Shown here in pieces: positions 47,701 to 63,400 of a stretch of DNA of 64,000 bases; positions within the stretch are counted from its first letter, which is position 1; each line of letters starts with the position of its first letter. The translations under genes and the position numbers were made by a program. The stretch lies in contig OZ281497.1 in NCBI GenBank assembly GCA_965637545.1, positions 27,032,001-27,096,000 of the forward strand, written 5' to 3'. The notes under the pieces were generated by a model. It was not told the origin of the DNA, searched no databases, and worked only from the letters and a program-made list of their open reading frames with translations. The DNA comes from Phallusia mammillata. Lineage: Eukaryota.

Positions 47701-50183
47701 GGAGCTCAAGTCTTTGTAATAATAAACCCATCCTTTTAATAAGATGAAAAATCGTTTGTCGTCTGAAACCGAAAACAACGTTTGTTAATTATTACACAAT
47801 TGTAAGCTTAGGAAGAGGGGATTGATTTGATATCATGCCTTTTATAGGCTTTGTGTATTGTGATTTATACAAATAAATAAGCGTGTTTTCTGGTCCGCAT
47901 AGAACGCTTCCGGACTGTTTCCAGTAATATATAAAGGTTCATCTATAGCAGGGACGGGCAACTTCTCCAGTCGGCGGGCCTGATATGGGAAAATGAAGTA
48001 CTTGGCGGGCCGGATTCTTGAATCAATACATTAATCGCGCATTTATCCAGTGATTTAAAACGCATTTTGGACCTAATAAACCAAATACAATCAAGAACGT
48101 CACAATCACAATACAGTCCAAACAATCTAACTGATATTATAAAATTATTCACCACAGCAAATTTAATGCATACACAACAGACTTAGATACTGCTGAAACA
48201 CTAACTAGGCTACAAGTGTGGAAACAAAGGAAACCGTGAAAGCAGGCCACACACAAGGTTGGCAGTTATGTCGTAACAATGGATTTATGGTGCAATGGTA
48301 CGGCGGGGAAGTTTTTTGCTATTGGGGAGCGTTACTGTCCGTTACAACTATAATTTGACATAGTAAGCAAGTAGTGGGGATTGCGGCAGACTGTGGCTGC
48401 GGGCCACATTATCATGTAAGACCAGAAACTGTCTGTGGGCCGCTCAAAATCCCGTCGCGGGCCGGATCCGGCCCGCGGGCCGTATGTTGCCCGCCCCTGA
48501 TCTATAGGCTAAATATTATGCAAATTTATTTTTAGTTTACCAAGTCGAACAGAACTGATTTTTTTTATTGAATGTAAACATAAACAAACTCTCGTCACCA
48601 GCTGCACTGATGAGACCTTATAGGTCGAAACAGTGTGCACTGTCTGCAGCTTATCATTTATTGGCTCATATGCTTTTACATTGATACTGTGACACTGAGC
48701 CGACTTCACTGTGGTTCCCAAGCAGTTGCTTGGCCACTGTGAGCCAGTTTCATTTGTGCTGTATGCCCAGTTGTGGCATCGCACAGACTGGGTGATGTAT
48801 GGGGTTGTACCCTGTTGCTCACCACAAACTGGAGTGCCGTTTGATGGCTACACTAGCCAATGCGGCCGATCTCTCGTCACCAGCTGCACTGATGAGACCT
48901 TATAGGTCGAAACAGTGTGCACTGTCTGCAGCTTATCATTTATTGGCTCATATGCTTTTACATAAACAAACTACAAACATGAAAAGTTTAAAAAAGTTAA
49001 TTAATAGTTATACCAAAAATTGTAACTACAGGCAGTCAGAAACAGTAATAGTCAAAAATTGAAAAAAATATGTGCCACATTTCGATCATCATCAGTGCAG
49101 GTGACAACAGTCATTTTTGAAACGTCTGCATACTGATTCTATATACGCAAGTTCTTTGACAGTTATGTTTATGAATAAATTACTCTTTATGCCCTTGTAT
49201 AGTGTATGAATAAATTACCTAAATGTGCCATATGTTCTAAAAAAGATATCGTACATATTGTCAGACACTCTTTGCTAACCCCGTTAAAAGCATGGCAATG
49301 AACGCATGAGTGCCATATGCAGCCTGTGTTCTAAAGTTTATGCTGCTGTTAGTACTTGATTAAGTGGTAAAAACCGTTCGCCGGAAGCTATTTTATTTCC
49401 TTATACCCATAATTATGCACAGCAGGGAATAAACAAGCGAAAATCGATTCTCAACAATGTTTTCCAGGAAAACAGATGATAAACGTTGACGATCTGCAGT
49501 CAATCAATTTCAGGCGATAAGGGTTTGTGCACTGATTTTGCAAATTGAGATTGTTGTTATTAGTAAAAAAAATGCTCTCCAGCCTAAAACGTTTATTAAC
49601 GCGCATAACTTTCATTTTTATGACGTCAAGTACGTCACGCACTAAACGTGGGAGGCAAAAGTTCAAACTGGTGAGCCGTCATTAATCTACCTCAGCCAAT
49701 TTACACACGCAAAGCATGTGTCACACAGAATGTTTACTAACGAGTTCGCAAAACATTTTCTGCATTACGAATTTACAATTAGGTAACTGATGTGTATTTA
49801 GATGGTAGGTCTAACATTTTCCCTCTAGAAAGTTGTGGTAACGCTTTTAAACGCCAAAACTGGAACAACACACTGGCCTGCCAAATTGGGGGAAAATATC
49901 GTAAACATTTATTCCTCAACCAAAAAGTGGGCATTGTACGGCAACTCATGGGACAAGACCTCAAGACCCCCCCTGATTACTCCATATAGTGATCGAAATG
50001 TTACCCTTAACGTTTTCTCGAGAGAAGTAAACACAAAAACTTACAGTTGCTTAGCGGAGTGAATGGGATTTTGTTTCGACCCGACTTTTTCAGCATCCAT
50101 CCCCGCTTTGTCACTCCTCGTTCCAAATTCAGTTGTTCTGCTGGCAGGTTCTGGTAAGCCTCGGGATATTGAAATTCTGACAT
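41732..50183 (-). CDS. SH3BP2: SH3BP2 (3BP2)-like adaptor: N-terminal PH domain plus long Pro/Tyr-rich region; no SH2 domain seen
   Basis: Minus-strand exons 50183-50045, 47762-47657, 47151-47054, 46547-46479, 44496-44346, 43798-43641, 43008-41732 join in frame. The PH domain (GVTKRGWMLKKSG..RFFILLKGWVYYYKDLSSKSPQGAFSLQGY..RVITAEE..FKV..RTYYF..KSW) closely resembles, from recall, the vertebrate SH3BP2 PH domain including the SPQGAFSL motif. Confidence 0.82.
44719..45019. mobile_element. hAT (Charlie-like) MITE
   Basis: TIRs CAGGGGTGGGCAACCT / AGGTTGCCCGCCCCTG; 8-bp TSD GTTTAGTT / GTTTAGTA; internal GGGCCGCA motifs. Confidence 0.88.
45130..46275 (-). mobile_element. 5'-truncated, frameshifted LINE (CR1/L2-group-like) 3' end
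   Basis: ORF pieces YLGLMFTPTLSWHDHI..LYRSCVLPTLEYG, WNNLPKEIRSIKSVSVFK, and a C-terminal zinc-knuckle-like E..QHLFLNCP; A-rich tail; 12-bp TSD ATATGATTTATT at 45118-45129 and 46276-46287. Confidence 0.88.
46948..47017 (-). ncRNA. Minimal (Penelope-type) hammerhead ribozyme motif, stem I mutated
   Basis: Minus strand TTTACC-CTGAAGA-C-GAT..GTC-GAA-ACGT-C-GTTGCAAAAATACAATTGCCAGAAGAGCTCT; same family as 14548-14652. Confidence 0.6.
47949..48499. mobile_element. hAT (Charlie-like) MITE
   Basis: TIRs CAGGGACGGGCAAC / GTTGCCCGCCCCTG; perfect 8-bp TSD ATCTATAG (47941-47948, 48500-48507); GCGGGCC subterminal repeats. Confidence 0.9.
48600..48651 (+). ncRNA. Type I hammerhead ribozyme, copy 1
   Basis: AGCTGCA-CTGATGA-GACC/TTATA/GGTC-GAA-ACAGTG/TG/CACTGT-C-TGCAGCT: full conserved core, three paired stems, GUC cleavage predicted after 48644. 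Confidence 0.95.
48882..48933 (+). ncRNA. Type I hammerhead ribozyme, copy 2 (identical to copy 1)
   Basis: Same sequence 282 nt downstream; predicted cleavage after 48926. Confidence 0.95.
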
Positions 50184-60400: not shown

Positions 60401-63400
60401 TTCAGGAATATGCAGACAAAGTGCCATGGCAACGGGGAAAGAAGTTTGGTCATGGTATAACCCATCATATCTCATGCGACGTTTTGCAGGAGATTAAATT
60501 AAAAAAAATTTGTGCAGATTGCATTTTTGTCACTGCACCTAATGAAAGCAGAACAAACACAATTTCAACCGTTCGAAGCTCTTCAGTTAATCAAGTACCT
60601 CTCTGCATAAGATTTAAGTTTTATCTTAAAGGATTTCTGAGGTACGGCAGTTTAAGAGGCTACGTTTTACTCCTTACCTAAATTTTTAATTTAACTTGAA
60701 ATTTGTCTTCAATCAAAATTAATTTTAGGTCAAAGTTGCGCCTAAACAGTGCTTTTGTTTTCTCTTAATTAACTTAAGTACACAGAGTCTGTCAGACCAA
60801 TCCGAGTTTTTTAGTAATGGTTAATCGCAATTTCATTTTCCTTTAATTGCATGGGGACTGTGTATTTAAAGCCAGACATTTGTGAACTCATATCTTGATA
60901 AAATATATGAAGTAGTTTGGCAACTTAGATGTACAATTAGCCGGATTCGTGTTTTGCAGTTTGCAGTTGAGCGGTCTTTCCAAGCATCTGCTCTCGAGTG
61001 ACACTTTGTGGTCAGCAAAAGGCTCTACTGGCAACCGCTGGATGACAAAGATGATTACAGTACACGACACCAACATTCAGTAAGTTATTCAACATACAGC
61101 ACCCTAACAATAACCACTTTTCTAACTATATTTTGTATCATTGGATTAATGTTGAAAGTTTTTTTCAATTCAATCAAAAACTTTAAATTGTTAAATACAT
61201 AGATGACACTGTCGCTGTTCAAGTGAATATGCTAAAAAATCGTGGCACTGAAATCAACACACGGGCCTGAACAACATTATTATTGCTGTATTTTTTGCTC
61301 TGTGATTTATTATAGTTTTCTTGTGTTTTTTTTTTAATTTACTGTAGTTGCTTATTATGAAACTTTCTTATTTTGCTTAAGCCTTTGGATTTTCAATGCT
61401 CATCTGTTAACAGAAATTCGTGGCTGCAATTTCAATCCAATCTTACGGAGAACGGTCACGCTGCGGTCGATGACGTTGCAGTGACGTCAGGCGTATGTGA
61501 CGTCACTTCGTTTGGTTGTGACTTTGATGACCGGTCGCTTTGCGGTTGGTCAGTGAAGAATGACGTCACAGGCAACTCGTTCAGTTTCCGCAGACGTTGG
61601 TCTCATCCGACAAAAGAAGATACTTTTAATGAATTTAATAATGAAGTTTCAAACGATTTGGCACAAACTGGGTGTGTATTTTTGTCTCATAAAGTTTAAA
61701 ATTATGGCAAACTAAAACGCATTAATGCAAAAATATCTCAAAGATATACATTACAATAAAGCCCAGATAAATTTCCGCATTGATGCTCAGATTGAAATGA
61801 ACAGTCTGGCAATCAGCTTTTACTGTTTATAACTTCTATTGTGACGCTTCTGATGCTTGTTTTTTCGCATGGTTTGCTTATAATAGGATTACAAAATATC
61901 TGACACATAGCGCTTTTGGGTTGTAAATACTTTTTCAATCCGCACAAAAACTATTTAAACGAGTTTTGCCATGCAAATATCAAAGAAAAACAGTTTTATA
62001 ATGTCACGGCCGCCCGTACTGATGCATTTAAGTTGACATGTCCGCGCCGCATAAATTCGTCTCCTCGGCCGCAGGTTGTGCACCCCTGCACTAAAGCAAC
62101 GTGATTTTGCAGCCAAAACGATTGGGTTGATTAGGATTACCACACTCAGATGTTTGTTTCATATCGTTTTTCATGATATGTAGTTTCTACATTTATTTTC
62201 GTCGCCATGTCAATCACATTCATCCGATGCAAGTGATTGTAATGTCCAGTCCTCAGTTCGAAATCTCCACAACTTCAAAGTGTTTCAGATTTTCACATAA
62301 AATCACTCAAAGAGGAAGGAGTGGAACTTTGGAAGTATACTTAAAGAGGCAAGCATCGTTATGAAAATATATTTCCTTTAGCAGGCCGTTTCCCAGTAAA
62401 AGCAAAACTCTTAGCATACATATTATTTTAGTTCAACTTTAAGACAAAACTATCATTATGAAAGCATAGAGCCAATAAGCTGCAGACAGTGCACACTGTT
62501 TCGACCTATAAAAGGTCTCATCACTGGTGACGAGAGATCGGCCGCAGACTATAGGTTAGACTTGGGTTTTTACCCTGTTACTCCCAACAAACTGGAGTGC
62601 GTTAGATTGCTACACTAGCAAATACGGCCGATCTCTCGTCACCAGCTGCACTGATGAGACCTTATAGGTTCGTTCCCGGGAGAGTCCTGGGTTCGAACCC
62701 CGTGAAAAAAAAAGTGTGCACTGTCTGCAGCTTAAAACTATTATTGGTTTAACAAAAAAACGTTGACAATTTATTACTGTTTTTAGTTGCTGTTCTTGAT
62801 AATAGTTGCAGTAAAGTAAAGATAAGTTGTACATTTAATATATTCTCCACTTTTTATTGCAGGAACGCCTTGCCTATTGTTGGGAGTTCAATATATGCAG
62901 GTCTGGATTTTGAAACCCTGCAACCAAAATCGTCTGATTTTCCAATTCTAACACTCAATGGAAATGAGGAAAGTTTATGGAACACATCAAGGTAACTCAA
63001 ATACCAACTGCTTCTTTCTTTCAGGTTTTGAACATACTTCAGTGTGTCAAATTAGACGTTGCTTTTACAACTGAATCATCTGCTCCATGCAAACTTGTAG
63101 GCAGTGTGATTGCTCTTTGGTGAATATAGTTGGTGTTAGAAAAAAGTAAACTTACTCTTATAAGAAAGTTTTCTTAGTTTAAAGGCATTTGATATTTAAT
63201 TGAAAAAAATGTTAAAAATTGTATTTTTTTCCATATTTCCCTTTGTTTTTACCTAGAGGTCAGTGTCAATTATGCTCTAGCACAGTTCGGAAACATGCTT
63301 GATTTAACGATTTAACTCAGCATGCGTAAAAATATAATTACTGACAATGTTGCAACTTTTGTAGTGTGCCAATCAAAGATGTTGGCGTATACAACATAGA

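Follow-up and report, generated by a model that had tools for sequence, protein, structure and literature searches.

Retrozymes without long terminal repeats (LTR) have been described in animals from coral, mussel and axolotl, and their mobilisation by Penelope-like elements (PLE) was proposed in 2020 (Cervera & de la Pena 2020, PMC7229834). Until now, the link between animal retrozymes and PLEs has consisted of their co-occurrence and, in vertebrates, of the phylogeny of pseudo-LTRs (pLTR); on the basis of this phylogeny and of the distribution observed in vertebrates, a 2026 preprint argued that animal retrozymes derived from PLEs, and left open the retrozyme life cycle and the invertebrate cases. 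We analysed a 64,000-nucleotide stretch of the genome of the tunicate Phallusia mammillata (GenBank assembly GCA_965637545.1, contig OZ281497.1, positions 27,032,001 to 27,096,000 of the forward strand, hereafter the window), in which a hammerhead-bearing element with a repeat unit of 282 nt is found at 48578-48972, together with the family formed by its relatives in the 240-Mb assembly. This 282-nt family adds a new example to an already known type of element and does not represent a new element class. The window copy is very probably a young copy of a high-copy, non-coding animal non-LTR retrozyme with a 282-nt unit, copied into DNA by the reverse transcriptase (RT) and GIY-YIG endonuclease of PLEs. 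No published description of retrozymes in tunicates was found in a literature search. Short type I hammerhead repeats, dispersed or in tandem, are also known in animals as schistosome Sm-alpha and newt satellite 2, and their sequences are not known to be related to the 282-nt family.

With the metazoan non-LTR retrozymes (PMC7229834) the 282-nt family shares a non-coding unit of a few hundred nucleotides (~170-400 nt), a single canonical hammerhead of type I in each unit, copies in tandem or partial tandem, a target site duplication (TSD) of more than 4 bp, a strongly self-paired monomer, the lack of LTR, of a primer-binding site (PBS) and of a polypurine tract (PPT), and coexistence with minimal-hammerhead PLEs, a pattern reported in other invertebrates. 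It differs from them in that its sequence is specific to the P. mammillata genome and in that its arrays are short (~4.3 units for the longest one among the sampled loci), most copies being single truncated ends or inverted twins rather than long tandems. The GC content of the unit (0.50 vs 0.39 for the window) lies at the upper edge of the low GC published for metazoan retrozymes (<45-50%). Whereas the RNAs of metazoan retrozymes are known in both linear and circular form, the 282-nt family is known here from DNA sequence alone. The LTR retrozymes of plants (Cervera et al. 2016, PMC4918200) are likewise non-autonomous, with hammerheads in terminal direct repeats and a monomer delimited by two cleavage sites, which in plants circularises. 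Only the plant elements, however, carry type III hammerheads, true LTRs with PBS and PPT and a 4-bp TSD, produce circles of 600-1000 nt and rely on Gypsy-type helpers.

Among the traits published for PLE insertions are truncated 5' ends, partially tandem copies (pLTR), a neighbouring copy that is both inverted and 5'-truncated, and a tail of 30-40 bp often found at one end only (Craig et al. 2021, PMC8557442). When a PLE protein was purified, it was able to nick AT-rich DNA on both strands and to extend them (Frangieh et al. 2024, PMC11167929); it initiated reverse transcription within the RNA, at two neighbouring sites, the spacing of which corresponds to the tail (PMC11167929). With canonical endonuclease-positive (EN+) PLEs (Penelope/Poseidon, Neptune), the 282-nt family has in common the pLTR partial tandems, the adjacent inverted 5'-truncated copy, the optional tail at one end, the two internal RT start sites downstream of the hammerhead and the AT-rich targets nicked on both strands. 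Unlike PLEs, it possesses no open reading frame (ORF), its tail measures 26 nt instead of 30-40, and it bears a canonical hammerhead whose 5-bp helix III is stable, whereas the PLE variant is minimal.

The window copy is built around two direct repeats of 93 nt each (48589-48681 and 48871-48963), 100% identical and offset by 282 nt, which were recovered both by reading of the sequence and with a repeat finder and which confirm to the base the arrangement described in an earlier note on this DNA. A perfect 13-bp TSD (ACATAAACAAACT), also announced in that note, brackets the element at 48578-48590 and 48960-48972. As the TSD overlaps 2 nt of the left repeat and 4 nt of the right one, the insert proper extends from 48591 to 48959 on the + strand. 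Numbering the 282-nt unit from u1 at window position 48591, these 369 nt correspond to u1-u282 followed by u1-u87 (282 + 87 bp), in other words to a 1.3-mer in which a body is flanked by two terminal repeats. The first terminal repeat (pLTR, u1-u87, 48591-48677, + strand) contains a hammerhead and the tail and shows no difference over its 87 nt from the second one (48873-48959, + strand). The terminal repeat is a plain restart of the unit, and no LTR, PBS or PPT is present in the window copy, which begins at u1 and displays the simple pLTR-body-pLTR architecture without being a twin. The 26-nt tail (u62-u87, 48934-48959, + strand), delimited from the 3' end clusters of the family, ends at a distal start site (L) at u87, the proximal one (S) at u61 corresponding to 48933. 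The left flank is A-rich, and the left TSD copy starts with ACAT as in the target consensus of the family; the first four nucleotides of the right copy, again ACAT, coincide with u88-91 and thus provide a primer-template microhomology. The AUG contained in the CUGAUGA core strand of the hammerhead opens only a 24-codon frame in the unit; the idea that it could be the remnant of a PLE ORF was dropped, as this frame closes at u92-94 and no continuation was found.

Each terminal repeat carries a hammerhead motif on the + strand, at 48600-48651 and 48882-48933 respectively. In the first one, a 7-bp helix I (AGCUGCA/UGCAGCU) is formed between 48600-48606 and 48645-48651, followed by the core strand CUGAUGA (48607-48613), helix II (GACC/GGUC) with its loop (48614-48626), GAAA (48627-48630) and helix III (ACAGU-GUGC-ACUGU, 48630-48643), C17 being located at 48644. 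The second hammerhead, 282 nt further, is identical, and the GUC site present in both places the predicted scissile bonds after 48644 and 48926. All core positions of a type I hammerhead are present (C3-U4-G5-A6-N7-G8-A9, G12-A13-A14, A15.1-U16.1 at 48630/48643, and H17 = C at 48644); helices II and III are closed by loops and helix I is open, which assigns the motif to type I. The minimum free energy (MFE) structure of 48596-48655 is a three-way junction with a helix I of 7 bp, a helix II of 4-5 bp and a 5-bp helix III capped by a GUGC loop, with an energy that is unexceptional (z -1.55). The presence of two identical type I hammerheads with all stems paired, as reported in the earlier note, was thus borne out. 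A + strand transcript of the locus would plausibly cut itself after 48644 and 48926 and give rise to a circularisable RNA of 282 nt, the predicted monomer encompassing 48645-48926 (+ strand). This monomer folds to -104.2 kcal/mol, as compared to -87.7 +/- 4.8 kcal/mol for shuffled sequences (z -3.4), and both of its ends lie in one stem.

A genome-wide search with the 38-nt hammerhead core yielded 765 matches at up to 2 mismatches, against none for a reversed control pattern, confirming that the element belongs to a high-copy family. When the 369-nt insert was used as a query, one other full-length match with 100% identity was obtained, at C6:20176508; several loci contained partial copies with 100% identity, near-identical copies were present at many loci, and older copies matched at 92-97%. 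These identities support the proposal that the window copy is young and, as previously suggested, probably derives from recent activity. The absence of divergence between its two repeats, on which that suggestion had rested together with the intact TSD, would date the insertion less well, both repeats coming from one template at insertion; youth is better shown by the 100% identity to other loci. Units within one array differ by 0-1%, a range that does not separate rolling-circle copying from transcription of homogeneous arrays. The ten sites that are diagnostic of subfamilies all fall in u147-253 and none of them is located in the hammerhead or in the 90 nt around it. Mismatches likewise amount to 1.2% in the hammerhead and tail vs 4.3% in the body, a comparison that is partly circular, many loci having been chosen by their intact core. 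A variant was observed at L001 1220-1305 (G000:C6:20176227-20176312), where a 15-nt insertion (AATAAAAAACCTTAC) in helix III would create a natural ribozyme-dead form within an otherwise young array.

We considered whether the structure found in the window could be a local tandem duplication, a satellite fragment or an assembly artefact. Tandem repeats can be mis-assembled and two of the sampled loci adjoin runs of N, at L021 (G000:C3:20702010-20705379) and L023 (G000:C4:25420394-25423739), indicating that assembly gaps fall at these tandem or inverted structures. In the window, however, what lies between the two copies of the perfect 13-bp TSD is exactly one insert of element size, both insert junctions are bridged by contigs of an independent-looking whole-genome run, and the same 1.3-unit architecture recurs with its own TSDs at many other loci. 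We therefore give this explanation almost no credence. No empty-site form was detected among the contigs of four runs, the unique flanks lacking coverage in three of them and both junctions being bridged in the fourth, apparently a run of whole-genome DNA.

In order to characterize the insertion process, the unit was mapped onto ~60 non-redundant loci comprising 65 insertions, and duplications were then sought in their flanks. Exact TSDs of 8-17 bp were identified in 28 insertions, all different in sequence, 22 of which measure 12-14 bp with a mode at 13; their A+T content is 77%, in a genome of ~39% GC. The earlier note would have been contradicted by a lack of other copies with distinct TSDs, but dozens of sampled copies have their own 12-14-bp TSDs. 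After removal of the TSD, the 3' ends of the copies form two sharp groups, u57-65 (mostly u60-62) and u86-94 (mostly u87), separated by 26 nt; relative to the cleavage site these start sites lie 7 and 33 nt downstream, far closer than those of the anole element (PMC11167929). Just 3' of each start site, the primer and the template share a microhomology of 3-4 nt on average, ACAT in the case of the window copy. When the targets were aligned with the tailed arm on the right, their consensus was A-rich, then 13 bp, then T-rich, symmetric about the TSD, which places a nick just 5' of a T run on each strand. Truncation at the 5' end and partial tandems are common among the sampled copies. Head-to-head twins enclosed in a single TSD, with their 3' ends outward, account for 35 of the 65 insertions, and no tail-to-tail arrangement was observed. 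Each of the 25 twins flanked by a TSD has exactly one arm reaching the distal site, an outcome with a probability of 0.5^25 for independent arms, while its second arm stops at the proximal site in 22 cases and slightly short of it in the remaining 3. No poly(A) or microsatellite tail was found at any 3' end of the sampled loci, and no spliced-leader sequence was seen at the 5' ends among the junctions listed for them. Copies that seemed to form a class beginning right at u1 proved to be mostly an artefact of BLAST hits split at the query boundary.

These scars match those published for PLEs and support the mobilisation by such elements that the earlier note had put forward, thereby strengthening the PLE link of the 282-nt family. 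A different origin would be a SINE-like (short interspersed element) sequence moved by the enzyme of a LINE (long interspersed element) of L1/RTE type, with the hammerhead as a passenger and the inverted copies resulting from twin priming. TSDs of 12-14 bp and 5' truncation are indeed also generated by LINE-mediated insertion. The 3' ends, on the other hand, carry neither a poly(A) nor a microsatellite tail and occupy two fixed internal positions 26 nt apart; both arms of a twin end in the 3' region of the element whereas just one 3' end results from twin priming by a LINE; and the strict one-tail rule agrees with PLEs (PMC8557442). A LINE-driven origin is accordingly very improbable. To the link between animal retrozymes and PLEs, the 282-nt family contributes evidence of a different type, and for a canonical hammerhead of the invertebrate kind: dozens of fresh insertion scars displaying the PLE-specific tail, the one-tailed twins and the staggered nicks at AT-rich sites. 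As regards annotation, the many short inverted "hammerhead pairs" of the assembly can be explained as insertion scars and not as devices in themselves.

The succession of events leading to these copies can be reconstructed from the sampled insertions. An AT-rich site is nicked on its two strands 12-14 bp apart, each time just 5' of a T run, and synthesis of cDNA starts inside the RNA at u61 or u87 with the help of a microhomology averaging 3-4 nt. Copying then either stops early, producing a 5'-truncated copy, or goes on over another one to four units. Roughly half of the time, the two nicked strands both serve as primers and generate head-to-head twins, with one arm starting from u87 and the other from ~u61. 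The window copy corresponds to a simple event, in which the bottom strand ending in ...ATGT-3' primed synthesis at u87 by pairing with ACAU (u88-91) and the template was read over 1.3 units, to u1. The 3' ends lie beyond an uncut hammerhead site and the copies exceeding one unit cross further sites, which implies that the template was a circle formed by religation or else a multimer that had escaped cleavage. For the window copy we infer a template that was either a 282-nt circle, religated and read 1.3 times round, or a multimeric transcript left uncleaved. In both cases the RNAs that were reverse-copied carried uncut or religated hammerhead sites, a point that bears on whether circles are true intermediates.

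Candidates for the enzymes involved are present in the genome, where 90 GIY-YIG matches exceed the cut-off with open frames of up to 973 aa. The 973-aa open PLE frame exists in three copies, and the ORF of L079 encodes RVT_1 followed by a C-terminal GIY-YIG domain.

Several results weigh against our reading of the 282-nt family as a PLE-mobilised retrozyme, or against the circular form of its template. The hammerheads, for which a database search had been advised, did not pass it: no Rfam hammerhead family reached its gathering score in the window, where Hammerhead_3 scored 24.8 bits vs 48.5 and RAGATH-1-hammerhead 21.4 vs 56.3, the sensitive mode returning otherwise only noise from snoRNA and RAGATH-4 models. 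In the whole genome, Hammerhead_1 scored at best 29.3 (cut-off 34), the matches being loop-II variants that belong to the 282-nt family. We treat this failure as a limit of the models, which are short and trained on other lineages, and not as evidence against the motif. Of the 21 sequencing runs listed, 20 contain the sequence; they stem from one organism, consist entirely of contigs of uncertain kind and include none recorded as RNA, so that molecule ends, strand and circles are not readable from them. Every PLE family seen in the genome carries a minimal hammerhead that is unrelated in sequence to that of the 282-nt family, and a BLAST comparison of the unit with 12 GIY-YIG loci, a search far from exhaustive, detected only a retrozyme copy lying nearby and no autonomous PLE with the same hammerhead or tail sequence. 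In the published in vitro work on a PLE, the substrate was unprocessed RNA and priming occurred without homology (PMC11167929), in contrast to the frequent primer-template microhomology of the 282-nt family. The sampled loci were picked by similarity to the window copy or by an intact core, and older, broken copies are under-represented among them. Finally, the 5' ends show no accumulation around the cleavage site, u50-60 containing 6 of 100 vs 3.9 expected. They cluster instead in u243-282 (41 of 100, p 5e-11), a distribution at least as compatible with linear transcripts having a defined start as with circles.

This clustering leads to an alternative in which the element and the PLE machinery are the same but the templates are unprocessed linear transcripts, starting in u243-282 of a master copy arranged in tandem or partial tandem, and the 282-nt circle is not an intermediate. 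As part of the same proposal, the hammerhead fold would act mainly as a protein-binding or initiation module, cleavage being a side reaction or occurring after, or against, mobilisation. The preference of the 5' ends for u243-282 is the same for arms started at u61 and at u87 and persists even after an extra full unit; the copies form size classes of ~90-125 nt and 372-397 nt; and all 3' ends are located downstream of an uncut hammerhead site. Moreover, mutating the ribozyme left insertion unaffected in the single PLE examined in vitro, for which unprocessed RNA was the dominant substrate (PMC11167929). The u243-282 hot spot could, however, equally reflect an RT stop at a structured segment near the u256-268 hairpin of a circle. 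In addition, canonical hammerheads of invertebrates cleave fast and their RNAs accumulate as circles (PMC7229834), so that uncleaved multimers should be rare. We regard this joint proposal as a serious contender, albeit one with less than an even chance of being correct.

Mobilisation of the 282-nt retrozyme by PLE enzymes is common to both templates, and the geometry of the twins suggests a further, more tentative, hypothesis. Thanks to its young and numerous copies, the family may record PLE integration base by base in a manner not described so far. The two start sites might be used in a coupled and asymmetric manner, one strand always priming at u87 and the other at ~u61, guided by microhomology and with the hammerhead sites intact on the template. 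We hold this to be possible but rather doubtful. Should it be true, the two strands would share a single RNA initiation module held by a dimeric PLE complex, and a retrozyme with a canonical hammerhead would constitute a natural reporter of the PLE mechanism at single-base resolution, including the choice between circular and linear templates.

A candidate helper was sought through the sequence surrounding the distal site, and a pattern combining the L-site 12-mer with a following non-T gave 176 hits in the genome vs ~41 for the reversed control. The recurrent sequence found after this 12-mer was rejected as a helper: the 12-mer occurs there by chance, in the 3' untranslated region (UTR) of a PLE family that is unrelated and has a minimal hammerhead. 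The loci L093-L100 (for instance G000:C3:13357107-13360140) belong to a PLE family that looks autonomous and possesses an RVT_1 ORF. Its minimal hammerhead (CTGACGATGCC..GGTGAAAT) is situated ~60 nt into the 3' region, its 3' end is fixed (..TTAATTAATC), and its copies often occur as inverted pairs a few hundred bp apart.

Other observations concern individual copies and their neighbourhood. Twins with identical TSDs were encountered at several places, namely L032, L033 and L034 (G000:C1, ~4.27, 4.43 and 4.45 Mb) and L046 and L047 (G000:C1, ~15.38 and 15.40 Mb), which indicates that segmental duplications subsequent to insertion copied these retrozymes to other places; one of the duplicated twins adjoins a GIY-YIG ORF. 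The window itself contains a second locus of the 282-nt family at 62451-62734, a head-to-head twin with a - arm that is ~80% identical. In its + arm the hammerhead is split between helix II and helix III by ~40 nt and an A run, and this interruption of ~40 nt resembles the 3' half of a tRNA-derived SINE (GGTTCGAACCC). Directly upstream of the retrozyme, at 48400-48503, lies a GC-rich palindromic repeat (GCGGGCCGGATCCGGCCCGCGGGCCG...), the summed contig depth of which is ~2000x that of the unique flanks in the whole-genome-like run, pointing to a short element of very high copy number; its motif also flanks the retrozyme copy L012. On the other side, at 49020-49150 (- strand), an old and decayed repeat of 50-65 nt was recognized, with at least 23 other loci at 78-91% identity. 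It holds a CTGATGA..GAAA motif together with the reverse complement of GAAACGTCTG and, by virtue of this combination, resembles the remnant of a twin insertion of the minimal-hammerhead, PLE-type kind, located ~60-190 bp from the retrozyme.

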